From Pocillopora damicornis (taxonomy: Eukaryota), in contig NW_020846063.1 in the NCBI RefSeq assembly GCF_003704095.1, positions 620,001 through 684,000 on the forward strand: a stretch of DNA of 64,000 bases, in the 5' to 3' direction. How positions within the stretch are numbered: the stretch's first letter is position 1; the number at the start of each line of letters is the position of its first letter. Positions 35,301-62,950 of this stretch are shown here, in pieces. The notes beneath the pieces are model-generated. The model ran no database searches, had not been told where the DNA came from, and worked only from the letters and a program-made list of their open reading frames with translations. The translations under genes and the position numbers were made by a program.

Positions 35301-37480
35301 GGATAGCTGTCGCGTGGAAGCTTAGTTCTCCCAAGTAGTTGGTGATGATATGGTTTGGCCCTGTATTCCCTTTGTAATTCTGGAAAATGAACACACTCTA
35401 ACCATTTCAAGGTGTACTATACTAAAGAAATATATCCTGCTCTGGGATTTTGACTCAAAACATGACCCTAATTCTAGCTGTTTCGCGATAAAATTGCCAC
35501 AAGTTTCACTGTATAGCCTCTGGGTGAAAATATGGCACTCAAACTGAATCACGGCGTAGTCAACGTAGCAATTATCTCTAAAGAGTCGAAAGTAATCCTT
35601 TATTATCCAGGATTATATTCATTTTGCTTTGCTTTATCATTTATCAAAAATTCAAGTTTCGCCACAACCTCCGTCAACCAATCAGATGCAAAACTTAAAC
35701 TAAACGCGAATTGGTCTCTCGAGTTTTTCCGCGCCTGAAGCAGTGCGCTTGTGATTCAAGATATCTTTCGGCTCTTTAGGTATTTTCCTTCTTTTCAATT
35801 TTACTTCTCTATGGTTATACGACACTAAATTAAAAGCGCGGTGAATTTCGGATTTCATACCCAGCTTCCTCGCTCGATTGTGTCATCGCTGTCTTTCAAA
35901 ACAAGAGTCTCGAAGTAAGATCTAGACTGCGTTAACTCTTTTAACTCCCAGAATTGATCAACATTCTACTTCTCCCGATGATATCCATGCATTACTCAGC
36001 AAAAAGATAATGAGAATATTCAAACTTATCCGGCAGGAGTTGTTATTTTGATCTAACACCAAATTCTCGTAACTCAGTGATTTAATGTAAAAGGAAATGT
36101 GAAGCACCTTGACGAGAGAATTAACAATCAGATCTTGGGAGTTAAAGGTTTAAATTGGTGTACATCTCTGTGTATCATATCTCAACAACTGTCCGTTACA
36201 TTTCTATTAAAAGCTACTACGTACCGCAACTCGTCCAAGTTGGCTAGTAACATTCTTCCATCCTAACCCCAGGGAAAACGCTAAGTAGTACTTTTCTGTC
36301 CAGTTGTCTTGCAATGGATCGGCTTGAGTTTTAATTGCTTTGACGTTCTCTTTTCGTCCAAAGTTTACTTCCAAGTACTCTCCAAGGCTACTTTTAGCAC
36401 TTCTCCAACACGAGGAGCCATCAAACCGCGCCTTAAAGGCCTGAAAGCCTGGTACTTCAGAAGAAGCAGTGATTTGACCGTCCGTTATATTGCCATCCTT
36501 CATTCCCAAAGGTCGATACGGAGCCGAACAGTCCGTAGGTGATACTGAGTCTAGCAAAATAAAGTTATAATTCATGACGAGTAAAATACAGAGTTACGGG
36601 CACCCACATTGTCATCATTATTAACGAGCCTTGGGTGGTAGGTTTTTAAATATTTAGTTCCTCTGGGGGAGGGGAAATTGAGTAGGGGTGGAGGGGGAGA
36701 GAAGGACTTTCACTCCTGCTCCTCCTCGCTTGCTGAAAGGAAAAAATGTCACTTACTTTCCTGATCAGTCATTTGTATTCAGAATCAAAATCGATTTTCC
36801 AAGTTCTCACCTTCACAAACTGGTCCAAAGAATCCTTCTTTACATGCACACTTGAATCCTGGGTAGAAATCAGTAGAAATACAAACCCCATCGTTCATAC
36901 ACGGTGAATTATCACAGGGTCTATACGGTCGATGTAAGTTATCTAAATACACCGTATCACTCGAATAGACAAAATACTTAGGCTCAGCACTCAGACGAGA
37001 TGCATTGTTCAGCTCGCATAGTTGATAAGTGTACTTGAAGTTAAGACTGAAGCATTGTGGGTAATTTTGGCAGGCGGTGATACAGGTGATCAGGCCTACT
37101 TGTGACATCATTCGATACACGTGACTGATGAGAGAGTGCCCAAAGATAGAATGAACATCTTGACAACCGGTTTTTCCAGTTTGACCGGCAACAGGTTGAA
37201 ACAGGATGAGAAGTATACAAGTTATCCAAGTCTTATTCTTCACGTCGGAAAAGATACTGTGGCCCTGAAAAAGTGGCAAAATCTCAACCTGTTATTAAAA
37301 ATGAGAGGTTTTGGGGTTCCCAAAACTCAGGAAAATCAGATTAATCAAGAATTTGACCAAAAAGACCGCATTTAAAACTGAAATTTCGTTTTACTAGTGA
37401 CTCACCCGAAACCACCTCTTCGGCTGTCGGTCGTGTAAGAAACAATTTGCTGGCTTTGCAATATTTGCAAAATTGAGCAT
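35239..37480 (-). CDS. PAN/apple - EGF - F5/8 type C (discoidin) protein, paralogue A, about 331 aa
   Basis: Exons 37480-37406 (tentative first exon), 37264-36811, 36550-36225, 35379-35239; total 996 nt. CITAC...CFSLNF...CELN (PAN), PCMNDGVC...FKCACKEGFFGPVCE (EGF), PLGMKDGNITDGQITASS...IRIYP...LRLELYGC (F5/8C). Confidence 0.85.
35932..36153. mobile_element. piggyBac-type TTAA MITE (intronic)
   Basis: ttaactcttttaactcccag ... cttgggagttaaaggtttaa; same family as 24426-24634. Confidence 0.7.
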
Positions 37481-38738: not shown

Positions 38739-41037
38739 CTATGAGCCAAAGACGTCGCACCCATATAATTCAGTGCGCATGGCTGGTCGTTGTTCCCAAC
38801 CAATGGGGCGAATTCTTAACGCTATACATCGGAATGGTTTGCTAATTAGGTTCTTCACATAGCCATTTGCGTTTTTGTTTCCTGGGAAAACCTTTTCAAT
38901 AAAGGGAAAACAATTATTAAGAGTCGAAAATATATTCCTGGGTATTTCGCGTGATATAAGCAGCGGATCACCAGTTTGGTTGTGGTCGTAAAAAATCTTA
39001 CGACACAACTATTTTCCAGTTGAAAGAAAATTGTCCAGACGATTACATCTTTCTAGCTTGCCTATCTGGCGTTTTTTCAGCGCTAGATGCAAAGCGAAGG
39101 AAACAGAGCTTCGAATATTGGCAGCGAATCCATTCCGCCTCTCATAATTTCGTGCCAAACTTCTCGCGATTTCGTGGCATGTTCTCTCGGTTTCACCCCT
39201 CAACACCTCAAAGCGCAAAAAAAGGTCACCAGTTACGCAAGCCGGTATTTCCTCCGCCTTTGATCAACTTGTAAGCGATTCTGACTCAATCAGAATGTTA
39301 ACTGCTCATAGTAATCGATAAAGCTTAAGTTATTCACTGCAGTAAACTACTTCATATGTCTAAGGCACGTTAGACATGTTTTAAGCGAAAAAAATTATGC
39401 TAAAAAATCTTCCTCGACCTATGATTAACTTGACTCATTTAACTGGTTGGAAATGAGCTTCCATGAGAGTATAAACACTAAAATTCCTACCCTCCTACTC
39501 GCGCCATCTTTATGTTTCATCCAAGTTTTTTCATCTTCACTGTATTCAAGAAAATATTGTTTCACCCAGCAGTCTGGCACTAGGTCATTTGCATCTCTCC
39601 AGCCTTGCGTGGCTACTGCTGTTATGAGTTTCACAACAGAAAATCTAATCTTTACAGAGGAAATACAAGATATGTAATTTGCTGCTAACATATCAATATA
39701 TTTTTGAGTTAAAATTATAACGTTTTCACACACGTCGACAAAGTAAGAAGGCTGATAAAGAAGTCTATACATTTAACTAAGACATCGAGTTGGCCGTGGA
39801 AGGTCTGGGTACGAGACTATCCCCGCTCTTTCAGCTTCTTTATGTCATTTATTCACCCATTTATCTTTTAAATTAAACGACCAAAGGAGTAATGATTACC
39901 TCGTTTGAAATATCAAGCTCACACCAATAACCAGTGAAATAATTACTTCGTTTAAAACCTACCTCCAAATATGGATCCGAATCGTTTCTTAACGCTCGCC
40001 ATCCTCCAGGCTTATAAATACGACCGCTGGCTGGTGGGCTGTCGGGTTCAGACGATGATGCAGATATTGTAAAGCTGCGTAATTTGTCATAAATACCCAG
40101 TGCATCACCATCGCAATCTATGGCAAAGCAGAAAAAAAATATCAAACTTTTTTTCTCAGTAAAGGTCCATATGCACACGGTAGTGCTCCCGCAACAGATT
40201 TCAGTCAATATCAGAGTCCGTATTTGGTTATAGAGATATTGACACAAATCTGGTTCGCCTTTTAACGCATTTGATTCACAATCATAAAACCGTGAAGTGA
40301 CCACTGGCAGTGCATGGCTGATCTGAACTAAGAAAGTCAAACACGTCACGAAAAACTCAACGTAAAAAAAGAAAACTGACTGAGACTGAAGAGTCGGAAC
40401 AAAACCGCGATCCAGGTTGTAGTTTTCCATGTGATCGGTTATGAGGGAGTTGCAAGTTCTTTTTTTCTGGACCGATCAGAGAAAGAATTTAAGCAAAATC
40501 GAGGATATCCCCGGTATTTTGAAAATCGGTTGAAAATGGATGTAGTTTGAGTTACTTGTGATTCGACGTAATGATAGTTTTACTTGATAGCATGATTTTT
40601 GTCTTACCTTGGCAGCTATTTCCACTGTACTTTGATGGGCACTGACACTCGTACCCAGGATTTTTCGTCCGTAATACGCATTTGCCACCATTTTGGCACG
40701 GAGGGTGCACGCATGCGTGATAGAGGCGATAAAGATTGTCAAAATGCACCGCGTTTTCTCGCGGTAAGAGGTTTTCAGGATGCGACAATCTGGTGCCCTT
40801 GTTCAGCTCACAAGATTTTGTGGAAAACAAGTAATTTGTACTGTAGCAGTCTGGGTGTCTCTCACACTTTGCTTGGCACTTTTCAACAGACGAAGTTACT
40901 AACACGGCTATCACGTGACCTTCTAGAGCGCGGTTTGAAACTGATTGCATAGTTCGGCAATATTGCTCACCGGCGAATATTGTTCGTAAAAACAGGCAAA
41001 TGCAGTATAAAACGAAGCAGTTTTCTTCCAGAGCCAT
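38739..41037 (-). CDS. Secreted PAN/apple - EGF - F5/8 type C protein, paralogue B, about 298 aa
   Basis: Exons 41037-40608, 40117-39963, 39649-39491, 38891-38739; total 897 nt. Signal peptide, CQAKC...CYSTNY...CELN, PCQNGGKC...YECQCPSKYSGNSC, ITAVATQG, VFPGN, MRTELYGC. Confidence 0.87.
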
Positions 41038-44000
41038 TTCCAATAACGTTGGATGGATGCGATACCTACAAACGACCAAAATAACATTGAATTCGCTTTT
41101 GATTCCAAATACACGAGATTCTGCACTAACCGGTCAGATTCAGCGGTATGTTAGTCCTCTCTCTTCTGATTTTTATCCCTTGTAATGTTTTTTTCCTTTT
41201 TTTTTCCACCAATTTCAGTAGAATAGTCTCCCCATCTTTCATTTAAAATCAGAGAAACTAAGGATTTCCACTGCCATCGCTTCGGAACCTACTAAAAGAG
41301 AAAGCAACTGATTCTACAAAGCTGCTCTTTTTTAATACACACCCTCGACAATGGAACATTAATCTATATGTAAATTTGATATATCTTCAGTGCCTGTCTT
41401 TTTTGAAGATTAAACATTTATGTCAGTAAGATGACCACGGCCTCTATTATTGGATCTTATTGGTATGATTAGATCAGGAGAAACTTGCTCTGTTTTCAGA
41501 CATTAATTGTACATTTTCGTCATTTGCAACTTCAAAAAATTAAAACCTGCGTTATGATATTACCTTGTTTTGAAAGGTTGCAATAGAATTTTGCGGAAAT
41601 GCAAAAAATTGTGACCGAAAATGCATCTGTCTCTATACTTATCACAAGTATTTAATTGAAAATTATAATAGATTCTCTTCACAAGCAAGAATTGCACAAA
41701 AAAACTGCACCACTGTTCACTAGATACTTACTGTAAGGGGCACAAAACTGATTCTGGTTTATGTAGAAGACATCTTGCATACATCGTCCCTACATTTTGG
41801 TTTTACATGCATTTCATATCCCAAACGACAAATTCAAAACGAGTTCAAAGACAGCTTTATGTGTGAAATAAACTCCCTTTGGTTGGGATTTCCCTTTCTA
41901 ACACATTTAACCGTACACGGCCACGAAAATTGGTTTTTAAAAGAGAGTCGCATTTCTACCACGAAACAGCTATGAAAACCACCTGCTATGTAGAAGAACG
42001 CTGGTAATAAAAGGAAGAAAACGCGTCCCAAGTTCTGCATACTGCTCTATGATGCATTCCTTCATTTCTGAGTATTACCCTGCAGTGTTATTTTTGCTCT
42101 AAATTCATATTGATCTCGACTTACCTGAAGAGAAAAAGGCCAGTTGCTGTCTGATATATGAATGGGTTCAATGAAACAGTTAGTATCACAGTTCAAAATG
42201 GCAACTTATTGCTGTACTTCTTTACCACTTTGACGCAAATGACTTGCAGACAAACTTGTAAGTTGTATGTAGATGGAAAGATCGCCAATGAAAGTTTTCA
42301 TTATTTATTTGCAAGTCCTCATGCTGTCATTTCATGGATCATATTTCAATTAATTCTAAAAGGAAAACGATTCACTTCACTTGCGGCTGGTTAAACTCTT
42401 TGAATTTTTTAGGTAAACAAAATGTAATTAAGCGCACGGGTTTGGTGTACAGCTCCAATCTATCTGCATCCTTCAACTAAACAGCATTCATCACACATAA
42501 CATATTGCAAAGTCTGATATTAGGATAATCATGAACTGAGTCAATGAGATAGGAATGTTCCAATTTTAGCCAGTAAGTAAACTTGACTATCTATTTCTAG
42601 GAAAATGAATTAGCTGGACAAGGTTTGACATGTTTATGTGATATATATGCCTACGAGGAACCGGAAGAAACAAAAAATACCTAAAAATTTGCGTAAAAAA
42701 TATATTCCACAAATTCAAAGACAGGGTGTTTATTCTTTGATGAATTTTCCACTGAAGTATTGATTTCTTGAGAATAACCCTATTTTTCCAGTCGTGGTTC
42801 CAGAAGCCTAACAATTTTTCAGCATCTTTCCTCCGTTCAGACAAGGAACACTTTAAATCTAAGTGATCAAGGCGACGTCAGTCACTGAAAATGAAAATAC
42901 TGTTCTATTTGATCAATGTTCTGACTGATTTCATAAATGATTGACTGAATGATAAAATGTTTTCTTTCTTGTTACACACCCTGACGTCAAAAAGCAGCCC
43001 GCGTCGAAAGTCAGTAGGAAGAACTTTTCGCAAAAAGGTGACCTGCGCGGCTGGCAGTTTTTTTGTATACTTTGACGGTTTTTCGTGCGAGGTTCAACCA
43101 CCCTTTTGAGGTATGAGTCCAAGGCTTTGTCAATCTTCAGTGCTGAAATAACAAAGCCTTTGTTGGGAGATAATTTAGAGGAAACACACGTTATATTGAG
43201 TTTTCACGATATTCAATTCTTTTTACTCGTGATCACTACATCCCAGCAGTACACAACATAGTAGACTCTCCGTCTTCCGTTTACACAAAGGTGTTCTAGT
43301 TGAGTGTCGAAAGCATTCTAGGATTGCATTGATTTTGCTTTTATTACATTTATCACTTTGCTCTGATATTGGTTTCGAAAAACCACGCCACCTTCTAAAC
43401 CAATCAGAAGTAAGACGAACACTGATCGGGAACCGGCCATACTCGAACGCTTCGAACCTCTCAGCCTCTGATTTCTCACCCAGATTCTCTGCCGAGCTAA
43501 AGCGCATTTATGAAGCAACGTATGTAGCTTGAATGTAGCCCAACAAGAGAGTTAAACATGCTTCGGATGAAGAACAGTTGAACAGAGGACTAATGACATT
43601 TGTGGCACAGAATTAAATATCTTCTTTTGTTCCAGTTGGCCATTGAGATTACGGTTTAACAACATTCAAAGTGGAAGTGAAAATTCACGATACTTTGAGT
43701 AGCAGCTCCTTAAGATGGAAAGAAAGGGTTGGCAATGATCTACAAATGCACTAGCATGCCCAGAAATTACAGCTTGAGGCAATCAACGTGTTACGTACAG
43801 AATCGTTTATTACCTCTATCAGGATTCTACTAGGATGCCCAGAAATAACATCTTACAATTAGATCTTAAGGTAATCAGTGGGTTGCATTTACAGAATCGT
43901 TTATTACTTCTATCAGGATTCAATTCTTTGCAAATAAAAACTTCTGTACAGTCCCTGCCCACTTCCCTACCCCCTACCCCCTACCCCCTACCCCATGGGA

Positions 44001-45430: not shown

Positions 45431-48074
45431 TCAATTAGATGGCATTTTCTGTTTCATTAACTTCCAGAAGCTTGGTGTCATGATGTCCTTCCCTTTGAAC
45501 GACTTGGTTAAGAAACTCCCAGCCACCATTCCATTTGGGAGCTGTGTTGCTCCTCCATTCCGTCCAAGAGGCAGGGCCATGGCTGCATTACCAGGCTTGT
45601 ATTCTTTTGGGCGTTTGCTTTCATTGAGCCGTTTGATATTTTCAGCAACTGCATCTGTAGACAAAATACCAATAAAAAGTAAGTTGTGATAAATACTGAT
45701 GACAGTCACAAAACCTGCTAAATAGGTTTCCTTTAGGAGTGGGAGTGTCATGACCAATTTTGCATGCGAAATGTCCCTCCCTTGATTACTTTTTAACATT
45801 TCCATCAAAATCAATCAGAGATAGTTACCCATTTTAAGACATATTTAAGGTAAATTACAAGGTCTCCAAAATGGTCATCTTGGACATTAATACTGTTTAC
45901 AACAACAAATCCTTAAAGTTTTAACTAGAAAACAAAATCTGTACAATCATCATTTAGTTATCATTTATTACCATTTTTTTTTTTAAAGATCAAGCTTACC
46001 AGCATGCAGTTTTGCAGTGTACGCTAGTTTCAATTCAGGGGTGTTGTTACAATCTCCAATAGCAAACACATTTTCAATCTCTTCCACTTGAAGGAATCTG
46101 TCAACTTTAAGACTTCCATTCTTTTCCATCTTGTCTGAGAGTTTGGATTGGTAAGCAACTGAATTGACCTTGAGTCCAGTACAGCGGAATACTAGATCTG
46201 CAGGCACACTGGTTCCCTGGTCGGTAGTAAGTGTCACTGGCCCTGTAATCCACGGTTTGTCTGAATCAAACTGTAAATGAAAATCATTTTCATAAAGTTT
46301 TCAGTAAAAAGTAACTAAAACTCAATTTTAGTAGAGCTGAGGGGAGTGTAAAAATCAAGCACCAGAAGTAGTAGGAATATACAGAGACATTGACAAATTC
46401 CTCTGGAAACATATTTGGCCTAAAGTTTCCAAAATGATAGTTTTTGCAACTCAACTCACATTCAGGTCATCCATGTCAACTCGTTCCCCAAGGACTGTCT
46501 CCACTTTCAGAGCCTTCATTCCATCCTGAATCTTTTTAACAAACTTGCGTGACAATCTGTCATCCAGTATTTGCTCCCTGTTGTGCATTAGTGTAACTTT
46601 CTTGTCTGGGAAGTCTGAGGCTAATTCACCAACTAACTCTACTCCCACAGGACCACCACCAATCACAACAATTTTGTTACTCTTTGCCACCTGAAAATGC
46701 ACAAACAAGATAAAGTGGCTCCCTTCTCTCACACCTTCTTTGTTGCACTGTCAAAAATTAATTTACTGTTTTTCACCATGGTATAGACTGTTAAATAACA
46801 AAATTAAGACCTAAGTATTGAAGAAGTAACTACACCCACCGTTATTGCCTTGTAAATGCCATTACTTGTGTTTTAAATTACTGTCACATCTTAAGTGCAT
46901 ACAGTTAATCTTGAATAAGCTACTTTATAAATACAGGCCACCTATACTTCAAAATTATCAAATAGACACAGGGTGACAGTTTCATCGCACTCTTTTGGAA
47001 CAGAACCATAAAAGAGTATCATGAAGTTTTAGGTTCTGAAGCATACCTGGTCGGCACAATCTCTGTAGAGCTTTTCAGCATCTTTCATGCTTGTTCCAAG
47101 GGGAACTTTACCTGTAAAAAGTGGAGGGAAAATTTTTTAACACTTCCTTTATTGTGATTGTTAAGATGTACAAAACAAATGAACTTTGGTGTTCTCCTAA
47201 AGAATTAGTAGACAAAGATATCATACTTTGTTGAATCAAATATGCAATACCAACGAACTAACAACAAAAATGTGAACATAACTGAAATTTCTAAAAATGT
47301 TTGGTGAGTTATGGCCATTTATAATGGAAATCAGGATACAAATGCAAACCACTGAACTACAAACAATATTGTTATTGCTCCTCATTTACTAAACTAATTG
47401 TCATTTAACACAAACTGAAGTAGAATTGGATTGATTAAAATGCCTTTATTACTGGACAAACATGCCTGAAATCTGTCTATCCAAAATTTCCCTGTATCCA
47501 AAATTTCCACGTATCAGCCACATTTTTTTATCACATTGGATATCAAGATTGTGTCAATAGTTTTAAACAAAAAGCATGGCAGCGAGTATTTCAATCAGTA
47601 TAGATCTCTCACTTTTATTTTCAGGTTAAAAATTATCTGCCAAATAAATACAATACACATGCGAGCATCTGGAGCTTTGCAATTATACACCAACATGCTT
47701 AAATACACTTTACCTGGAAATGGTACAGATGAGCCACAAGCAAAGACAAGATAATCATAACTGATTTCTTCACTGCTAGCCAGTGTCACAGCCTTTCTGG
47801 AGATGTTGCAACTCACTACACGATTCTTTACAAAGGACCCATGCTTTAAAACACCTTCATAAGGAATCAGAGTCTTGTTGACAAATGCTGGTTCAACAAT
47901 ACACCGTAATCCTGCCATGTTGTGATGGAAAGCATCTTTAGGATCAATGAGAACGACCTTGCAGTAGCTGTCCAAGTCTATCGCAAGCTTCACTCCAGCA
48001 TAACCACCGCCTACTATCACCACCTGACAGCTGTGCTTTGGTGCTGATGATGACGAGGAAGAAGAATTCCCCAT
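45431..48074 (-). CDS. AIFM2: Apoptosis-inducing factor 2 / ferroptosis suppressor protein 1 (FAD/NAD(P)H oxidoreductase), about 383 aa
   Basis: Exons 48074-47714, 47111-47047, 46690-46460, 46270-46000, 45654-45431; total 1152 nt. Myristoylation start MGNSSS, VVIVGGGYAG, DAFHHN, IVVIGGGPVGVE, NVFAIGDC, KSFKGKDI. Confidence 0.93.
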
Positions 48075-50139
48075 CACATATGCGTATAATGTGCACTCAT
48101 ATGGAACCTGAAAATGAATGGATCCATCAAATACTTTGTTTGTATGAGGGAACAAACTACCAGGGGCTCATATCATGTCAAGACATCGCACAATCATGAC
48201 AGCAATAATCACAACAGTGACACACATCAAAACATTAAGAGAAAGAGAACTCATCTCTATCTTTAGATTACAATTTCTTCAAGAGCAAGATTTAATCAGA
48301 GTGTTAAATGATAGAAGATAACATTTGAAAAGGACATAAAAAGATAATTTCCACTCAAAAAAAGTTCTAAGGATCACATTCTCAAAATACCTAATAAGTG
48401 ATAATTTCATAAAATAATTTTTGAAACATACCCAATCTGGGAAAGTTTTTAGAGCTAATTAAACCAATATGCTCTGCCTCTATTAAGCTCATTTAAAAAT
48501 CTTTTATTTCTCTGTGATTTCATCCTTGATAGTTTGCGAGATCATGTCAAAAGACCAGACACACACCTGTTAAAACTGGGCTAAATTCAGGGAATTTTCA
48601 ATTGTTGCATTCATTTTTGAGGTAAGTAAGAATTCTGCAGTCACTTCAGAAAAAAGAAACAAACTTTCTTGTTGATTAACCCCTCAAGGAGAATGGTTTA
48701 AAGTTGAAATTTTCTGCCAAGAGCAGCTGGTTGAAAATGTTTATTCCTGCATATTGCAGAATTAATAAAATATCCCCAGTTTTCCTAAACTTTACTCATG
48801 GAAAACTGATGGAAAGCTTCAAAGAAAAGATACCATCTATTGAAAAACAGTACTCATAATGTTGCACTTAATTATAGGAGGCTCTTTTTAGCAATTGCAT
48901 TTATTGTAAAGCTATTGAAAAAATGATTTATTTTAAATTAAATAAAATCCATCCTTATCACTGAAAGCTGTTGAAATCACTCTTAAAAACAGACTGCTGA
49001 AAGTAAGCAACAGTCATTGAACAATTAACTGCTTTGTTAAAAAATGTTTTGAATTCCAGCAAAGCTTTTGTCTTTTTTTTATGTAGGTTATATACATCTG
49101 TATATTTAAATGAAACACAACAAAAGTATTTGTGATTACAGTTTTCTAATCTTTACACCAGTTTCTTGCATTGTTTATGGATTCTTTAATTCAAAATGGC
49201 TTATATAAATTATGGGCTCCACTGGGTTGAAAAAAAGAAAGTATGTGTTACATTTAAAATCTTCTAGCTCTGCTCAGTTGTCATTTAACTTGAATTGGCT
49301 GATAAATCAATAAATTAAAACCTATTACGTGATTTATACAAATAATTAAATCACTTCTGTACATATTTACCCAACTAATGCTGTGAAGAAATTTGAATTT
49401 GATTGGGTGATGAAACCTTTTAGCAGAAAAAAAGTCAAGTTCTCGTAATTGTCACAATTAAGTATCTAAGTTTAGTTCCTCCAAATCTTCCAATCTCCAA
49501 GAGGAAAAATACTTTGATCTTCTTTGAAGAAGCAACATCATATTATCAAAATGTTTGAGGTTGCCACCTACGCACCGAGGAATCCAAGAATAGACCTAGA
49601 TTTACCAACACAAATAAGGCTGCATGCATAATTTATGACAAACGTACAATGTCTGTTGAAGAGAGACATTGAATATTGCTGACGAATGGCAAATGACATG
49701 ACCAAAAAATGGGTAGAAATAGTGTTAGGAATTTTTTACCCTGAAGATTCCAAGTAAGCATTGATATAAGAGTAATAATAGCAGAAGGTGTGTGCATTAT
49801 TAAATTGTATGCAAGTATGCATGAGACGCCCTCATGAAATCCAGACATTTCATTGGCAAAACCCGATCAACTGTATTCTTGCTCACAAAATTAAAATCAA
49901 AAACTTATGTACTGTTGACCTGGATTTATACTTAGAACCCTCACAGAGCTTGGATTTCTTTTATCACATATAAAGCCACTAAAATTACAGGGAATAGCTT
50001 TCTTGAACCTCTTCTGATTTTGTGCCCGGTCATGGAAAAATAATAAAAACAATTTCATATGTGTGCACGGAGACTTGAACTGTTTCATCATCGGAAGGTA
50101 TTGTTCGGTGGATAAGAACCATATCATCTACTTGATAAA

Positions 50140-51120: not shown

Positions 51121-54100
51121 ATGTGTGCAGAAATGATGGATGTTAGTCGAGATGAAGCCAAGCGGATTCTCAGGAGGCTTGGTAAGCTGAATTTGTATTT
51201 TTGGATTTTACTTTATATCTTTCCTGCACATTTGTATGATGCTTGACAAGTCAGACTATACTGAAATGACTTGAATACTTATTTTCAGAGCTAGAGGCAT
51301 ATTCATCCATCATCAGTGCTTTCAGGGCCCAGGGAGAGTTAAGTCGGTGAGTGTGGAAGTTATGTTTTAGCAATAAATAGTTGTAATGTCAAGAATTGTG
51401 GAGTCAAGATTCAGAGATCTTTTTGGGAAAATGCTGAAACTGTGAAGCCACTAGGTCATAAACCTTTTAGATTTGAATTAAATCAATCATACACTATGTC
51501 TGCCATGCATTTCTAATTTTTTAAGCTTTGAGAATTTGGTGTGAGTTAAACAATGGCTCCTTTTTTATCATTTGGGTCTCTTCTTCTGACAATTTTGCTT
51601 AGTAATGTAATGGTATTGTTAGGAGAGATTTCTGATTGATATCATTGAGAGTGAAAGAGTTTGACTGCTATGAATAACTTACCTTGAACAATAGAGTAGC
51701 CTTTCATTCATTCCATCCTTAATTTCAATATACCAAATTACCTTAAAATAAGCTGTTATTTTTTTTAACGTCTTGTAAATAAAGTCTACACCTTTGCCTT
51801 TTTCTCCATATTGAAATCCATCATTGACTGAATATTAACAGGGCTAAAAAGAAGATCTTGCAAGATCTTGGAACTCAGCTGAGGTAATGGTTTGAAAAGC
51901 TATATTGCAATTTTCTCTACATTTCTTACATATAGTTAACCACTGCAAAGTTAATTGTATTGTTTAAAACTTATGTGAAGATCTTTTTTTTTTTCCGACA
52001 GTATTTCAACCGAGCGTCACAGGGCTGAAGTCCGAAGAGCCTACAGTGATGATAGACTTGGCATTGTGGCTGAGAGGTACAGAAATAATTAAGCACATTG
52101 TATCAAAATAAGTAATTCTGTCATGAGTTGCTATCCTCACAGGTAGGACAAATAGGCAGATAGTTCACAAAAATAAGTTTTTTTAGGGCAAGACACTCGA
52201 CTCTTTCAGTGAATCTCTTCACCCTGGAGTATAAAGGGATGTTGGTAAACTGTTAGCCAAACCTGACAAATTGCAGACAGTATTCTGCGATGGACAACAT
52301 CTTGTTGAAGAGGAGAAACAAAACTCTTAATCACTCATGGCCAAATTCTAGCAGTAACAGACTATTAGTCTGTCATCCTTATTGTTGTCTGATCTGTTAC
52401 AGAATCAAGTTCCTTTGACAATTTTTAATAGATGTCCAACACCTACTGTTTTACCCACAATCTAGACACTTTTCTCTCTTATACTGTTCTAGTATTTATG
52501 GTGCAGGCAGCTGTGCAGAATGGGCAGCAGAGGGGAGAAGGCTTGTACCACTCATGCCACGCCTTGTTCCACAAACAGTGTTCAGCTCCTCAGCAACTGC
52601 TGCTGCAAATTCTGCAGCTGCAGCAAATGCTAAACTTCCTGTTTCATCAGGTAATGTAGGGGGTTAATCCACTCTGATTTTAAACCAAGCACAGTCTACT
52701 AAAGTCATCCAAAACAAAGTTTTTAAGAGAAACCCAAACAATAAGAATTTTGATTTATTTTGTCATTCGCAGAATATTGTTGATTTCTATCTAAAAGTGT
52801 GATCACTGTCATGGCTTTAGCCTGGTCAGTTACAATCAATGACAAAATTGTGAAAACATTGCCATCTGGAACCAATAATCTCAAATGAAAAAGGAAACTG
52901 ATTCTATTATCAATTACTCTATGTCCTCCTCTTCTGATCACTGTTGTTCGTAAATTATTTCTTGCTACTTTACTCAGGGCAGAGAGCTTAAATTCAGATT
53001 TATTCAGTTGTAAATACAATCTTTGCACATATATTGGGTATCAAATAACTTTTATTGCCATATCAGGTTCAGATTCCAATGACCTGCTTTACTAAATTCA
53101 TTGAGTTGGATGGTTTTCATTTTTCTGTTTTAGCTAATAAAGCTGGTAGTAGTTCAAGTGCATCTGTTAACACATCATCTTCACTGACAAGCCAGCAAAA
53201 TAGTAAGACCACGGCAGCCGTAAAACAACCTCAGACAGGTATCCAAGATCTGCTGTACAATTCCTATCCAAGATCTGATTGTTAATTTTTGCCTTAAGCT
53301 GATACATATTTCCTTGCAAATTATTTACCAGAATTTGGTGTTACTCATCAATATAACAACTTCTACCTGATTAATTTGAGTATTCTCATTACCTGTTTAC
53401 TAAATAAGGTATGTATATTATTGGGAGAAGTTGCATGTTCATCACTTCCAGGAGTTTAAGGGTTAAGAGATTTGGGAGATATATTAGGATATATACTCTA
53501 GCTGGTAGGTACATCTATAGCTGTTCCCATGACCTGTTTGCCAGATGATGTCATGATATTCTGATACATGCCCAGATTCTAATCACCTCTGGAAGTATTG
53601 TTGGTGGATGTAGAGATGCCAACTGATTGTTTTTCAAATTAATTGTATTTATTTCATTCCATAGGTGGAACTTCATGGATGTGGAGGAGGCCACTAGACT
53701 GTTTTTAAAATTAATCATTTTATTTTGTTCTATAGGTGGAACTCCATCAAATGATGCTGATGCTTATGATGATGATGATGGAAAGCCAAAGAGAAAAAGA
53801 CGTTTAAGCGTGACGAGCCTCAACAAGCCAGTTACAAAAGTGACCATCCCCACCCCCTCCCTGGTGTCAAAAGCTTTCACCAAACAGACCACATCAGTGA
53901 GCACTATGACTAAGTCTGGTAAATCTCTTGGTCCAGCAGGGACAATCAAAGCTGTCCCACGTACCACAAATCTTCCTGCATCAGCAGCACAAGTAAAACT
54001 ACTCACCAAGACGGTGGCAGTGTCCCAAACCAAGACAATCCTGAGCTATAAGGCAATGACATCGACAACATCATCACCTGCAAAAGTCCAAACAGCTGTG

Positions 54101-57100
54101 ACACAGTCGTCACCAAAGACTCAAACAAAAACTGCATCTGGAGTGCCCCCCAAGACAGTGCTTACTTCAAAAGCTCCATTGTCCACTGCAGTGAAGAATG
54201 TCTCGACAGGAGCTTCAAGTCCAGTAGCCACTGCGAGTCCTGCTGGACTGACACTCAAAACTGGTTTGACAGCAGCTCAGTTAGCGGCAAGACACAAAGT
54301 GAAACCTGCAGCTGCCAGATTCAAACCTCTTCCAGGAACTGTGAAGTTCAAGTCAGTCACACCAGCTACTATGGGAACCTGTTCCACTGTTACTATGGTA
54401 ACACCCAGTCCTAGTTCTCAAGCCTCCTCTACCTTACCTGTGTCAAACACACAGCCAGTTGTCCGTGTCATTCATGTTCCAGGAACTGGAGGTGTTGGTG
54501 GGAGTAAACCTGTTGTTGTCATGACAACAGGTCTCAGTAAAACAACTGTCGCTGGTGTGGTTCCTGGAAGCAGTAGTCCTTCTAGTCTTACAAAGGCAAC
54601 TTCTCAGGTAAGTAATAAATAGTCTTATTTACAATTTTTTCTCACCGGCCCAACATTTACAATAACAAACATTTCAACAAACAAGGAAGGATCATCTTCA
54701 AAGCAGTGACAACACATGATAATAGCTGCAGCTTAATGAAAATGAGATAACTTGTGTGGTACTCACTCATACAATGTACACCTGTAAGCATCCACACAGG
54801 TAAGATTTTCCCTTCAGATCTGCTTCCTTGTCAGTCGAACATGATTTCTTTTTTCCTGTTTTGAGGTTCTACTGTATGAATTTAACCCAGATTATAATTT
54901 GAATTTATATTAAATTTACACTCTCTGATAATTTTGCTCTTTGATGGGAGAAAGTAGGGCCCTGCTGGATGGGTTGAAAGGTTGAAAGTTCTGGGTGCAA
55001 GCCTTGGCTGGGTCACAGTGTTGTGTTCTTGGGTAGGATACTTTACTCTCACTCTGGCTCTCTGGACCAAAGGTTAAATTAAATTTATACCAAGGGAACT
55101 CCCAGGAGACCTCACAAAATGCTGGGTGTATAACTTGGAATGGAAGGGTATTTCATACAAGTGGAATATTAGTACTCTTAGTGGTTTCACCTCATGGAAA
55201 ATGGCTATAGCAGCCATGTTAGTCTAACCAATATGGGATATAATGTACGTTTTTTTATGTATGCTGTATTAATAGGTGGTAACTCAAAGCACCTCAGTGA
55301 ACAAAGCAGTAGTCACAACTGCTGGCACAGTCACATCCCAAGCTCCATCAAAAACTCAAGTGTCTAGTGCTGTTACTCAGTCAGTTTCGTCAGCATCCAA
55401 AACAGTTGTTATGACAACCTTAGTAGGTGGTGCAAAGAGAGTGGTTCTGTCTGTGCCAGCCCCTTTACAACCTGGTTCCAATATCGTTCCATCCACATCC
55501 TCTCAGGGGCTAGTGATAACCAAGACACAAGGTAAGTATAATTGTTTTAGTCACTCAGCTGTGCCCCCTCCACAGGGATTGTTTCAGCCTTCTTAGCCAA
55601 AGCATTGAATCATGTAGCCTTCTGTAATAGATATATGTAATTAATGGTTGGTAAGTGTGGTTTTTTCTGTTATTCATTGCCTTCTCTGATATTTTATTAG
55701 GGATCCCTCTGACTTCCTCATCAGCCTCTCACTCTCAACCTGTTTCCAAGAAAGATGCCAAAACATCACCAGCATTAGCCACTGTCTGTCCTAAATCATC
55801 TCCAACACAGATCGCACCCAGTCTGACAACTGCAACTGTCACTACACAGGTGAGATCAAGACCCCTCCCTACTATTCTTCCTGCTCCTCCAAAACCATCA
55901 ACTGTGGCTCCAACTGCTGTTTCCAATTCGGGCAACATTAGGAAGCTTCCAACTATCTTACCAGCGCCAGTTAAGAATGTTCCAGCTGTTATTCCAACTG
56001 TTCTGGTTCCTGTGGCTACTGGAGTAACTGCTCACACTGCATCACAGCTGCAGTCTTCAGTGCCAATAGCTGTAAATACAGCTGTCTCTCAGGGTGTAGC
56101 AGCTTCAGTTTTGCCTCCTGACAAAGAAGGGGAGCAGCCCTCCCCTGGAGTACCAGAAAGACAAGATTGTGGTCTTGATTCTACAGATCAGAGTAATGCA
56201 ACCATTGAATCGCAATGTTCAGACATAATGGAAAACTCTAAGACACACGTTGCAGTGAGCTCTAAATTGGCAGTGACAAATGAAAAAAACGTTGTGACTG
56301 AATGTGATAACAATACGTCATCAGAGGATGATTCTCTTCTAATTTGTTCTGAAACAATTGACAATGCAGGCTGCAACATACCTGAGGTACCATCAGCTGC
56401 GGAGTTTTTCAAAAATATTGCTGAAAGCAAACCTGTTAAAAATCCAGCAGATAATGGTGCTGAGGAAATGCCACAAACTGTGGAAGACTGCCAAGAAGCA
56501 GCTGTAGATCCAGTATCTTTACAAGATGGTGGAGTCTCTCTCCTGGATATAGATGGATCAAATGTGCAGAAAGTACCAACTAAAGACATAGAGACAGCAG
56601 GAAATTACGCTAAGAAATCCATGGAAAATGTTACTGTTCAAAGATTGGATGATTCTAGTGGAATATCTGATTTAGTAAAAGATTGTTTACCTGGAAATAT
56701 ATATTCAGAGTCTTCACAAGTGGATAATGAGGATGAGAATTCTTTTAAATTTGACTTGGAGTCAGACGTTCAGTCATCACTTCAAGGTGTTCAGGAAGAT
56801 GATCAAAATGTGACTGGGACATCTGCAGAGGATGGGCCTCCTGTGGAAAATGCCCTTCAAATAATTGCAAGCTTTGTGGAAAGCATGGAAGGAAGTTCAT
56901 TTGAAAAACATGAAGAAGTAAAACATACAACAACAAATGATCATCAGCTTGATGATTCATCAGGATTTTTAAGTGAATTACCATCCTCTAGTCAGGAAAC
57001 CCCCATTCTTGTTCCTAGTGCATTTACATTGGAGGAAAAAACAAAAGACGCAACTGAACCATCACCTACTGTGTCACACTCTGGAAAGATCATTGATGAA

Positions 57101-59957
57101 GGACAAAGCCTGAGTGTTTTGTCACAATCTGAAGATGATAGTTGGGATGTTTCTGACGCACCCATTGATGTTTTGTCAACATCCACAAGTAGTTCTAACA
57201 GTATCCCTGAAAGCACATTGGAGCTTACAGAGAAGGAAATGAAGGCTCTTGAGGCTTTTGGTAGTGTTAGAACCAGTGGAAGGAAGAGAAAACCTCCTTC
57301 ATCTCTTGATGTGTCACCACCAAGACAAATTAGTGGCTGGGTGCGTGGTGCTCTCAGGTTTGTTAATTTTATTGGGTGGATCTGTTGATCACATAGACTA
57401 TAAATCATCATATGTTCAAGGGAGTTCCATGATGATTTGATAATCTGCAAAGTAGGAAAAAGAAGCATGCTACAGTAATGTTTTAAAATCTCATTTGCAA
57501 TCCATCATCTGCTCCCTCAATTTTCTCTGTTAACTACTTCCTAGCTCATTTGCATTTCTTTAGCTTCTCCTTTCCTTCTGAAGACAATTTTAAAAGAAAA
57601 ATGACCCAAAATAAATGATGACAGAGCTCCCTTAAACAGTATCTTAAGTGGGGATTTCCAAAAAAAGATGGTTACTGGCAGTCTACCAGCACCTATGAGA
57701 CCTCTTACAGGTACCACCATCTATTTAGCCGGCAAGCAGGCTCTTGTATTTTGGTTTTGCTGTATGGCCCCTTTGCCAAGTACAGCTGCCTACTACACCA
57801 TTGGCAGCTGCTTATGGTAAAGGTTACTGAAACCCTTATTTGAGTAATTTATCTATTAAAATGATTTATTCTAACAACTTTTTACTCTATCATGATCTTG
57901 CGATATTGGTCAAATTTTGTCATCCAAAGTGCTTTCAGAGTCATCACTGTTTTTGAGATGGTTTTGTGCATGATGAATTAGCCATTGGTTATATTGTAGT
58001 TATTGAGTGTTTCATTAGATATTAACTGATCCTGATAAAGCTATGGTGACATTTCCTCAGCCTCCTGCAGAAAGTTGCCAGCTATCGTGGCCAAGGAAGA
58101 CGGAAAGGTGATTTCAGTGCTGCCACTTGGTTCCTCAAACCAGGTAAAGTAGACTGACAACAAGTAATAAATTAACTAGGCTAAAAAAGAGATCCCAAAT
58201 GAATCTTTTGTTCTTTGCAAAACTCACATGCAAATGATGAAGGAATGCACTTTTGGACAGGGCCAAGCTTGGATGGGTTATGGAAACTTGTGATGTAATG
58301 AATTTTTAGTTGCATCCTTCGTACAGTGAATTGTATTTGTCTTCTTAAATGTTTTTTCTCATCAACTTGCTTCTGTTCATCCTTCAGCTTTGTTAATCAT
58401 ATAATGATAAGATCTATTAATGTTTATATAATGATTGAAATTGACATGTTTTCCTATGGGATTATTATCAGCATCTGAATGCCTTTTTGTCATACATCCC
58501 TCTTATGAATCAATCTACTGTACATTGTGACTTAGCTGTGTTGTTGATGTTGTTGTTGTTGTTGTTTTTTTAGTGGACCCAGTTGATGCACCTGGCTACT
58601 ACAAAGTAATAAAAACTCCCATGGATTTTGGAACGGTTAGAGTGAAACTAGAGGTTAGTACCATTACCTACTGTCTGTTGCAAGACTTTTTTTGCATGAT
58701 TATATCTGATTGGCTCATGACAGATATTCTTTCTGTCAAAACTTCTGCTGCCATTCTGAAAGTGGTCAAATATTTGAATATAAAATGTTTATACACATTT
58801 TTTCATTAGAAGACAACAGTTTAAATAAATGTTATTATGTTTAATTTCATACTTAAGTGGTAAGTAAATGGTTTGAACCACCCCCAAACCCCCCCCCCAG
58901 GCACAAGCAATGGTCAAATGCCTGTGGGTTGTTTAGACAGGGGGAAGGATGTTGAAGCTTTGAATTGATTACTGATGGAATAATAATATATGGTTGTGTT
59001 TTTTTAGTCTGGGAAATACCAGGAGTACAGTGAATTTCATTCTGATATGCTGTTGGTGAAGTCAAACTGTTTAAAATACAACCCTCCTGGCCATCATGTC
59101 CGACAGGTCAGTTGAATTCTGTCTTATTTCAGGCAAAGGGAGGACTTTTTCAGTGATTGCATAGATTTATCTAAACTTAGGAAGGGAGTGTGAACTCAAG
59201 ATATGTTTGCAAACTGGCAACAGTTACTGTGTCGGGTTTGCAGAAATTGCAAGAATTCTCTCGACTATCGTAGTTATTCATTGATTAGAGGTCATGTAAA
59301 CATGGAAGAAACCCTCTATTCTATTAGTGTTTCTGGAATACCTCTTAAAAATATGTCTAAATCGAAATTGTTACAGCCTTGTTAACATGCTAAGTGTTGC
59401 AGTTTTTCAAACATAATGCAAAAATTTTAATTCTATTCTAAGTTACTTATAAATTCTCTTTGCAGGACTGTGAGGAAGTGTTCAGGTTTTATGAAGCAGA
59501 GTATGCAAAAATGTTAGAGAGATGGGAAAAGGTAACAGTTCTGTGAAATGTTTTATGCATATTTTTTCAATGTAGAGTAACTTTATACATGTTAATGATG
59601 AATTGTGCATATTACCAAAGGGGTTGTCTTTGGATTGGCATTCTGAATGTAGGAAACATTTTTTTTTCCTGTCATGCATTGTCAAGTTGCAGAGGTTACA
59701 ATTAACAATTCTGTGGGTATGCAGACATCTCTAGTATTCAACATACAAATTGTGCCTGTTAATTAAGAATGAAATAAAAAATTTGATATTTTCAGTAACA
59801 TAATTATATCCCTTTTTGTATTTAATTTTCAGTCCCATTTTAGTTAATCAATAAACACCATTCTGAACTGGGGAATTCATTTTATTTTCAGTGTCATGTA
59901 TCTCCTGCTAAAAAACCAAGACAAGCATCAAAGACAGAATTACCTGGCAGCATGTAA
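51121..59957 (+). CDS. EMSY: EMSY-like chromatin regulator with N-terminal ENT domain and C-terminal bromodomain, about 1225 aa
   Basis: 14 phase-consistent exons: 51121-51181, 51289-51346, 51842-51883, 52002-52076, 52493-52650, 53134-53238, 53736-54607, 55276-55531, 55701-57357, 58061-58143, 58574-58653, 59008-59106, 59466-59531, 59892-59957 (3678 nt). ENT region SRDEAKRILRRLELEAYSSIISAFRAQG...ISTERHRAEVRRA...EGRRLVPLMPRLVPQT. Bromodomain WFLKPVDPVDAPGYYKVIKTPMDFGTV...NCLKYNPP. Confidence 0.9.
52180..52330 (+). mobile_element. Degenerate SINE relic (intronic)
   Basis: gggcaagacactcgactct...ctcttcaccctggagtataaagggatgttgg resembles the central domain also seen at 54975-55130. Confidence 0.4.
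53255..53466. mobile_element. Degenerate TTAA MITE (intronic)
   Basis: caagatctgattgttaatt...agaatttggtgtt...cacttccaggagtttaagggttaa, colinear with 24426-24634. Confidence 0.65.
54975..55200 (+). mobile_element. tRNA-derived SINE relic (intronic)
   Basis: B-box-like gggtgcaagcc followed by cacagtgttgtgttcttgggtaggatactttactctcac. Confidence 0.45.
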
Positions 59958-61804
59958 AAGATGAATTGATCATTTTCCTCAAATCATCAAATGTTGTCTT
60001 AAAAAAACTCATGGAAGTTCCTGAATTGTTCATTTTACAAAGTCTAGCAGCAAATTGTTGTATATAAAATGTAATTTTATGACATACTTAACTCTGTGTA
60101 TAAAATACTTTTTATGCCTTGTCTTGTTTAAGATGTACATTTGTTGAGTTTTCTGGTGGACATGATGCATTTAAAGGTTATGTTATATGGCTGTTAACTG
60201 ATAATAAAAAAAGAGTATTCAGACAAAGGACTACCCAGTGTTGTCCACTCAGCCAGAAGTAGTAGTACTTGTCATTATGATTGTCAATAATGTGATTGAT
60301 ATCAGTGTAAGAGGGTTTCTTCTATGTTGCTTCTCCAATTGTGTTTAGTTTGCATGTCAGTGAAATGTACAGTAATGCACCTTTTTAAATACTTCAGATT
60401 GTTGGTCTGCCCAATGTTTGCCATTTGTTAAGGCAAGTAAGTCTTCTTGCTCATGACAAAATTGGAGTGGCATTGATAAACACATGTATTATGAAAAAGA
60501 GAGTAATTCATAGCCCATAACAAGTGCCTAGTGAAGGTTTTAAAGGAGGTTCTTTTAAAATTTTCTTCCAGTATCAGCAGAGATTTTTGACTGAAAATTG
60601 ATGCTACAGCATGTTATGTTACCTAGTTACACTGAGAAAGCAGGTAAAACAGTCTGCTGAGTATTTTCAGGATGTTGTTTGTGCAAATTTCTTGAAATGT
60701 GCTCACTTATTGTAAGTTTCCTAAATTTTGTACATAATTTGCTGACTTATGACTTGAGGGGTTAGATGTGGGAAATCTTATTAAATAAATACAGAATTCT
60801 GTTTTGCACTGTTTAACCAGCAATGATTTTAGCGATGATGGTATGTGTTGTTGAATACAAACCGCTTCATGCAACTCATCAGCATGTTGGTGTGTTCAAT
60901 GTAAAGGGAAACAAAAGAGCCAATGTTGAATGCTTTTCTGACATTTCATGTCTAAGCTTAGAGCATTTCCACCTTTACCACTTTTGTCCAGAGAAGACAA
61001 ATCAGGTTCAGATCACAAAAAAATTCTCTTCTGGACTCTAATTTCTAGGGGCAATTTAGGGCAGTAATAACAATTAGTGTGTATCCTTGCTTTCTGTGTC
61101 TTGAAGCTGTTAGGACATTTCCTACTCCTGGGTGGGAATTTAGGTGAGGTACTCTTTGGAATTCTCAAAAAGGGTGTGCTGCCCAGTTTTCGCATTATGA
61201 CACAATTTCAGACAAAATTGGCCACCCTCACTTGGTTCTTAAATTTTTTTTTTCAAACAGTTACTCAGTGTAAGTAATTCTAACCAAATTCAAACTTTTG
61301 GTGCTTCACATTAATCAAAGTAAAAAAATATAATGAAATAAATTCATGCAAGCTTTGGGATTGTTCACACTTTATTTCATGTCAGCCTCAGGCGTCATTG
61401 TCACACTCTGAAAAATAGTTTAGTTGTCTTTTAAAAAAAAGTTGCAAAAATTCAATTCTAAAAAGAAATTAATTCACTCATTCAAAGCTGCAGAAAGTAT
61501 TTCAGCAGGCTCTAAGGTTTTTTTTTAACAGTCATATAGAAACTACATATTTACTGTACATTAAGTGGAAAGAGTTTACTTTATTTCCTCTTACAGCACA
61601 GAAATATATTGAGGTGCAGACTTTTAAAGTCATAAGAAAAATGAAAATTGCTTTTTTGAAAAGAAAAAAACAAAAATGCAAAGGTAACACACTTCAAATT
61701 ATCACACTTGTCTGATATAAAATCTTTTGTACAATTAAAATGGTATTATAAAATGATAAATCTTAAACGTTGCACTCTCATAATTCATAAATTAATTACT
61801 GCCA

Positions 61805-62950
<1,146 letters not shown>

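Follow-up and report, generated by a model that had tools for sequence, protein, structure and literature searches.

EMSY is best described in mammals, where an EMSY/KDM5A/SIN3B-HDAC complex that resembles fly Lid/Sin3 sits at active promoters marked by H3K4me3, to which ZNF131 helps recruit it (PMC10578193). That EMSY binds HP1, BRCA2 and KDM5A/SIN3B is known for mammals only (PMC10578193), and for corals we infer it. Other proteins with an ENT domain have been found in plants, where Arabidopsis EML1/2 occur in a complex with the BET protein GTE4 (bioRxiv 10.1101/2024.07.25.605061), and in kinetoplastids, where an ENT protein belongs to the BDF3/BDF5/BDF8 complex (PMC9279504; bioRxiv 10.64898/2026.03.22.713544). 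Here we analyze an EMSY-like gene of the stony coral Pocillopora damicornis that lies in a 64,000-nucleotide stretch of contig NW_020846063.1 (positions 620,001 to 684,000 of the forward strand, assembly GCF_003704095.1), hereafter the window. The region very probably holds the single-copy stony-coral orthologue of EMSY in its ancestral layout, in which one mRNA encodes an ENT dimerization domain, then the LVPL segment that binds HP1 and, beyond a long disordered linker, a canonical bromodomain.

Results

The window is AT-rich animal DNA. Its EMSY-like gene was modeled by three-frame reading and inspection of the DNA, and the joined exons were translated by script for the stop count and the junction contexts. 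The 14 exons agree in phase and yield a coding sequence (CDS) of 3678 nt and 1225 codons (Table 1), all introns are GT..AG with pyrimidine-rich acceptors, and the only in-frame stop is the terminal one at 59955-59957. The acceptor of exon 7, ctatagGTGGAACTCC (53730-53760), has a near-duplicate, ccatagGTGGAACTTC, 71 bases upstream (53659-53690), which would lead into a stop; a small duplication probably left it behind as a decoy. The 1225-residue product is enriched in Ser, Thr, Val, Ala and Pro.

Single window exons or database orthologues served as queries in all sequence searches. By tblastn, 12 of the 14 exons are colinear with P0291, a 1195-residue protein of a related coral, at 79-93% identity in the bromodomain exons and 47% in exon 9. 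In the coral's own genome, the peptides of exons 5 and 9 each had one match, and that of exon 12 had one weak extra match (E 9.7e-4) to another bromodomain; the gene is single-copy. The Pfam ENT model had no match in the same assembly, an uninformative result since four short exons share the domain and the controls were likewise silent. Rfam found no RNA families in the window. These results settle the annotation of the window: the gene is a normal EMSY orthologue, expressed, present in one copy and 1225 residues long.

Transcription was followed in RNA contigs from four runs of four independent studies (X1, X6, X8 and X12), compared over 54400-60390; the public runs containing the locus are labeled as coral or marine metatranscriptomes. 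All four runs carry the GT..AG joints 54607/55276, 55531/55701, 57357/58061, 58653/59008, 59106/59466 and 59531/59892. The critical joint between linker and bromodomain, 57357/58061, was read as 57352/58056 (cut +5) in X1, X6, X12 and X8, and the contigs that contain it have a depth of 24-65, on par with the contigs of the flanking exons, in each of the four studies. The remaining joint, 58143/58574, follows from contiguous positions in X6 record 11, the poly-T/GTT repeat at 58534-58578 being skipped by the aligner. This record is a single contig of 4578 nt that contains exons 7, 8, 9, 10, 11, 12 and 14, with exon 13 implied by its two flanking joints, and it reaches 1262 nt 5' of 54400, the length needed for the 1163 nt of CDS still outstanding and a leader of about 99 nt. 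At the other end, X1 record 3 and X6 record 11 are unbroken over 59890-60390, and the latter goes 368 nt further. The gene is thus transcribed as one mRNA, and the bromodomain exons are not a separate gene, because the first bromodomain helix straddles the 57357/58061 splice. In two runs, a 30-base piece of intron 11 (58940-58970) also lies inside RNA contigs that are otherwise unrelated, both of its flanks being loose ends, and is probably a short repeat common to other transcripts.

Table 1. Coordinates of the EMSY-like gene in the window, with the evidence for each feature.
Feature	Position	Strand	Evidence
EMSY-like CDS span	51121..59957	+	phase/splice check, tblastn with P0291, RNA joints
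Exons 1-4, ENT domain	51121-51181, 51289-51346, 51842-51883, 52002-52076	+	Pfam ENT on exon 4; PDB 1uz3/1utu; orthologue tblastn
Exon 5, EGRRLVPLMPRLVPQT segment at 52530-52577	52493..52650	+	phmmer against PDB 2fmm_E
Exons 6-9, linker	53134-53238, 53736-54607, 55276-55531, 55701-57357 (linker to 57328)	+	composition; RNA joints 7/8 and 8/9
Bromodomain, end of exon 9 and exons 10-13	57329..59531; 58061-58143, 58574-58653, 59008-59106, 59466-59531	+	Pfam, PDB, orthologues
Intron 9, interrupting the first bromodomain helix	57358..58060	+	RNA joint GT..AG
Exon 14, basic C-terminal tail (SPAKKPR) and stop	59892..59957	+	joint 59531/59892 in four RNA runs
3' untranslated region (3'UTR)	59958..60390 at least, probably about 370 nt more	+	contigs X1 record 3 and X6 record 11

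The N-terminal part of the protein carries the hallmarks of EMSY. Exon 4 alone gives a partial match to Pfam ENT (PF03735, 20.8 bits), the domain being spread over four exons, and aligns with the solved ENT domain of human EMSY (PDB 1uz3/1utu, E 2e-5); exons 1-4 are aligned by EMSY orthologues whose own ENT domains score 72-88 bits. Exon 5 matches human EMSY residues 79-127 as solved in the EMSY-HP1 complex (PDB 2fmm, chain 2fmm_E; phmmer E 1.5e-14), and it contains EGRRLVPLMPRLVPQT, 16 consecutive residues that are the same as in human EMSY. The conserved segment that in human EMSY binds the HP1 chromoshadow domain, RRLVPLMPRLVPQT, is present directly after ENT, and the identity of this LVPL segment keeps HP1 binding plausible. 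Exons 6-9 encode an acidic linker rich in Ser, Thr, Val, Ala and Pro, with basic KRKRR and GRKRK patches, so that about 950 residues of low complexity lie between the LVPL segment and the bromodomain; no Pfam family matched these exons. In the AlphaFold2 model of P0291, ENT helices occupy residues 10-81, and the equivalent of the linker is predicted to be disordered, with a predicted local distance difference test score (pLDDT) below 50 across most of 129-1058.

The C-terminal part encodes a complete bromodomain. Exons 11 and 12 each exceed the Pfam Bromodomain (PF00439) cut-off of 21.7 bits on their own, with 25.5 and 28.9 bits, and both match the BRD4 and BRD2 bromodomains in PDB. Across an alignment of 29 ENT-bromodomain proteins, 22 columns of the bromodomain region are invariant and the window gene keeps all 22, 21 of them visible in single-exon peptides and the last being a split-codon Val at a junction. 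These include the pocket Tyr (codon 58597-58599), which aligns with BRD4 BD1 Tyr97, and the pocket Asn (59080-59082), which aligns with BRD4 BD2 Asn433, in the numbering given by the chain offsets of 2oss and 2ouo, respectively. The invariant Trp (P0291 Trp1066) is encoded at the end of window exon 9, and the C-terminal S-P-x-x-K-K tail is conserved among orthologues. The AlphaFold2 model of P0291 forms a helical bundle at 1059-1183 with pLDDT 85-95, in which helix 1065-1078 bridges the position of the exon 9/10 joint. In Foldseek searches its top matches were the bromodomains of BPTF and BAZ2A (template modeling score 0.8-0.92, root-mean-square deviation 0.8-1.3 A), closely followed by BRD4-BD2 (1.6 A), and BRD2-BD2 also superimposes, both with template modeling scores in the same range. 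As modeled on this related protein, the domain is predicted to be the left-handed four-helix bundle of bromodomains (Z, A, B and C, with ZA and BC loops). Acetyl-lysine reading by the coral EMSY bromodomain is likely because all 22 invariant positions, including the pocket Tyr and Asn, are kept.

These results bear out most of what the original prediction had read from the DNA. It had proposed a 14-exon, phase-consistent frame linking ENT and RRLVPL to a full bromodomain, which our independent exon model reproduced, and a PVD..APGYY..PMD loop with a Tyr-Asn pair in NCLKYN, which the bromodomain exons contain. Its identification of an EMSY homologue with a built-in bromodomain is upheld by Pfam, by the PDB matches and by a single spliced mRNA, and the 57357/58061 junction on which it hinged is a GT..AG splice in the RNA contigs of four studies.

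The exon 5 search covered 1.84 billion cluster representatives at E<=0.001 and retrieved 170 proteins; nearly all named matches were EMSY or EMSY-like. By tblastn, 20 full-length EMSY-like cluster representatives match the window's ENT exons as well as its bromodomain exons. Among them are proteins of Cnidaria (Dendronephthya, Hydractinia, Sanderia), Echinodermata (Acanthaster, Lytechinus, Antedon), Hemichordata and Cephalochordata (Ptychodera, Branchiostoma), Mollusca (Liolophura, Haliotis, Mytilus, Mya, Pinctada, Plakobranchus), Nemertea and Annelida (Tubulanus, Owenia) and Myriapoda (the millipede Chamberlinius). A co-occurrence check suggested with the original prediction placed an N-terminal ENT and a C-terminal Bromodomain over the Pfam cut-off in 12/12 invertebrate proteins, including those of Trichoplax (ENT 30-97, Bromodomain 1846-1916), Lingula and Strongylocentrotus, the orthologue Bromodomains scoring 60-86 bits. 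By Pfam the combination occurs in Placozoa, three further classes of Cnidaria (octocorals, hydrozoans and a scyphozoan, beyond the stony coral), Echinodermata, Hemichordata, Cephalochordata, Mollusca, Annelida, Brachiopoda and a myriapod, and precomputed Pfam assignments add a nemertean protein. Among the best 120 profile matches, every invertebrate protein has PF03735 and PF00439 and every vertebrate protein PF03735 only.

A hidden Markov model (HMM) of the EMSY bromodomain gave the same division. Orthologous C-terminal bromodomains, three amphioxus species among their bearers, scored 113-224 bits, and a truncated Bulinus model scored 52 bits. Even at E 10 the HMM had no match in the lamprey, hagfish, gar and caecilian proteins, in the damselfly, cricket and spider proteins, in the protein nearest spider EMSY or in one sea-cucumber model. 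The EMSY of lamprey, hagfish, gar and tetrapods, including a caecilian by Pfam, has ENT without a bromodomain, as had been stated for vertebrates at the outset. The same holds for the EMSY of the two insects and the spider. A candidate remnant in the MAFFT-aligned caecilian C-terminus, which shared a few 'invariant' columns, was rejected as spurious because the HMM matches no vertebrate sequence at E 10. Fission of the gene in vertebrates was also rejected, no human bromodomain scoring like an orthologue on the orthologue profile within the coverage of PDB. The best human single domain on that profile is BRD2 BD2 with 85 bits, against about 200 bits between full-length EMSY bromodomains on the domain-only HMM, two scales that are not strictly comparable.

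The distribution supports ENT plus bromodomain as an ancestral animal layout that goes back at least to the common ancestor of placozoans, cnidarians and bilaterians. In the simplest history, the fusion arose no later than the placozoan-cnidarian-bilaterian ancestor and two losses followed, the first after the split from amphioxus and before the split between lamprey/hagfish and gnathostomes, and at least one further loss within arthropods.

Intron 9 behaves differently from the other introns covered by RNA. It is the only one within 54400-60390 that contigs cover from end to end, in three of the four studies, through unspliced contigs at 57380-58085, 57328-58061, 57328-57665 and 57700-57997. 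Their depth is 3-8, against 22-52 in exon 9. Reading through the intron adds 10 codons before a stop at 57386-57388 and would give an EMSY without bromodomain; these contigs may represent pre-mRNA or a minor bromodomain-less isoform.

Several other features were noted around the gene. Within 60206-62950, a convergent minus-strand gene contains a Hemingway/CFAP97 exon (62741-62947; Pfam PF13879, 50.5 bits), and an X12 contig of depth 379 enters the EMSY 3'UTR from the right at 60206-60390; because of this contig, the 3' ends of the two genes may overlap. On the other side, about 3 kb 5' of the EMSY start codon and in head-to-head orientation, an exon at 47595-48152 (-) encodes the N-terminal portion of a pyridine nucleotide-disulphide oxidoreductase (Pyr_redox_2, 37.5 bits). 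Farther away are two similar exons, at 36785-37276 (-) and 40552-41076 (-), each with a PAN domain followed by an EGF-like domain, which look like a tandem repeat in one gene or two paralogous genes, and an open frame at 31150-31827 (-) in which a FYVE zinc finger begins (28.3 bits, barely over the cut-off).

Discussion

By using exon-level searches, public RNA contigs and orthologue profiles, we found a coral EMSY gene whose single mRNA joins ENT to a bromodomain with an intact pocket. By analogy with mammals and flies, the ENT and linker part probably scaffolds a KDM5 demethylase/SIN3-HDAC complex together with HP1, and the bromodomain probably tethers this complex directly to the acetylated nucleosomes of active promoters. 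Because the acetyl-lysine pocket is invariant, the ancestral EMSY would most likely have docked the eraser complex on acetylated chromatin itself. The bromodomain was lost in vertebrates and separately in insects and chelicerates, and recruitment was presumably taken over by trans partners, for example ZNF131 or the bromodomain protein ZMYND11/BS69. A broader scheme can be drawn from these steps: EMSY would have been born self-targeting, its own bromodomain taking the KDM5/SIN3-HDAC eraser to acetylated active promoters; the reader would have been dropped in separate events, in the vertebrate stem and again in insects and chelicerates, and bromodomain or zinc-finger partners would have replaced it in trans; retention of intron 9 may switch the reader off in corals; and the cis fusion of animals and the trans complexes of plants and kinetoplastids would reflect an ancient, general ENT-bromodomain unit, which the literature searched does not describe as such. 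We offer this full scheme tentatively, as a possibility that is more apt to fail in some part than to hold throughout.

Some observations weigh against the reading of the locus as an ancestral, bromodomain-bearing EMSY orthologue that works in this way. The fold was modeled on the P0291 protein of a related coral, with the identity in the bromodomain exons given above; unspliced intron 9 is present at low depth, and the Logan contigs give no isoform proportions; and both acetyl-lysine reading and KDM5/SIN3 membership are extrapolated to cnidarians. The ZA region has W-F instead of the BET-type W-P-F, and this altered shelf may bring a different ligand preference. Taken further, the W-F shelf, along with a ZA loop a few residues shorter than that of BET proteins, could indicate that the bromodomain is intact and yet reads no acetyl-lysine, acting as a docking module for protein-protein or non-histone contacts or as a reader of another acylation. 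Atypical bromodomains have usually lost the pocket Asn. In EMSY, however, none of the 29 orthologues departs from the acetyl-lysine-holding Tyr and Asn, from the PMD motif or from the neighboring hydrophobic residues, and we consider a non-reader distinctly unlikely.

The low-depth contigs over intron 9 bear on two further explanations. If the locus comprised two adjacent genes, with a vertebrate-like EMSY stopping at exon 9 and a small bromodomain gene downstream of it, occasional read-through or a chimeric assembly would account for the joined RNA, and both the unspliced contigs in three of four runs and the stop that closes the read-through frame would be accommodated. This arrangement is contradicted by the spliced joint found in every study at the depth of its neighbors, by the first bromodomain helix and the invariant Trp being encoded 5' of intron 9, by exon 10, which begins in phase 2 at its acceptor and has no ATG among its 27 in-frame codons, and by the prediction of an ENT...bromodomain protein in dozens of species from at least 10 phyla. 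Transcripts that end before 58061 and bromodomain exons that form a separate gene, together named as grounds for abandoning the original prediction, are likewise at odds with the spliced contigs and the straddling helix, and we hold two genes to be extremely improbable. One gene that makes, under regulation, both a full-length reader form and a vertebrate-like form lacking the bromodomain through intron 9 retention would explain why this intron alone is covered from end to end in three studies. Its depth is low beside that of exon 9, and contigs cannot separate nuclear pre-mRNA from a mature isoform; we regard regulated retention as unlikely.

The origin of the layout had been left between an ancestral state lost in vertebrates and a gain in this lineage. 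Capture of a bromodomain exon block by EMSY in corals or cnidarians only could be suggested by the vertebrate, insect and spider proteins alone, which lack the domain. It has virtually no probability given the orthologous bromodomains of Trichoplax, echinoderms, hemichordates, amphioxus, molluscs, annelids, a nemertean, a brachiopod and a millipede, and the orthologues score 113-224 bits where the best human bromodomain reaches about 85 bits on the related full-length profile. Because the bromodomain is present across invertebrate phyla and vertebrates have ENT only, the ancestral layout with loss in vertebrates is the part of that proposal that stands, and the spread over phyla refutes the gain.

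The expectation that the layout would be new did not hold, because it is already annotated publicly for dozens of species, in RefSeq as 'EMSY-like', in UniProt as 'Bromo domain-containing protein' and in precomputed Pfam assignments. We found no published description of the animal ENT-bromodomain fusion in a literature search that covered few subscription journals and is weak evidence of absence. The coral gene adds one more member to a kind already known, though unstudied, and the gain of our work lies in interpretation rather than discovery, the facts already being in public protein databases. To our knowledge, nearly all experiments on EMSY have used the vertebrate protein. Our analysis indicates that this protein is a derived form without the bromodomain and predicts that the ancestral one had a conserved acetyl-lysine reader; the function originally proposed, a repressor scaffold with its own reader, did not hold as more than an inference. 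Such an ancestral reader offers a testable idea of how the EMSY/KDM5/SIN3 complex first found its targets and hints at which trans partners may replace it in vertebrates, a useful evolutionary footnote for EMSY biology and no new system.

The closest relatives of the coral protein are the invertebrate proteins annotated as 'BRCA2-interacting transcriptional repressor EMSY-like', such as those of Dendronephthya gigantea (XP_028412808.1), Branchiostoma floridae (XP_035692520.1), Acanthaster planci (XP_022098664.1) and Trichoplax (TRIADDRAFT_60216). Their parts follow the same order, from ENT and the LVPL segment through a disordered linker and a basic patch to a C-terminal bromodomain and then a short SP..KK tail, and they share all 22 invariant residues of the bromodomain region with the window gene; only the length and sequence of the linker differ (25-30% overall identity), in proteins that are themselves computer-predicted. 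Vertebrate EMSY (human C11orf30; PDB 1utu, 1uz3, 2fmm), orthologous to the coral gene by profile search, shares ENT, the 16 identical residues of the HP1 segment and a long low-complexity body, but has no bromodomain from lamprey and hagfish to gar and tetrapods. Taken alone, the bromodomain is most like that of BET proteins: BRD2 and BRD4 BD2 are the best single-domain PDB matches of the orthologue profile (E ~1e-22), NC.KYNPP.H is shared with BD2, and the P0291 model superimposes on BET, BPTF and BAZ2A folds at 0.8-1.6 A. Coral EMSY is not a BET protein; it has W-F in place of W-P-F and one bromodomain instead of two, Pfam detecting neither a second bromodomain nor an ET domain (PF17035) in the window exons or in 12 orthologues. 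Plant EML proteins carry an Agenet/Tudor reader, which no window exon or tested orthologue matches in Pfam. As in the animal gene, the ENT proteins of plants (EML1/2 with GTE4) and kinetoplastids (with BDF3/BDF5/BDF8) partner bromodomain readers; there, however, ENT and bromodomain are separate polypeptides, whereas the animal gene fuses them in cis, a fusion that would fit a recurrent partnership between ENT and the bromodomain.

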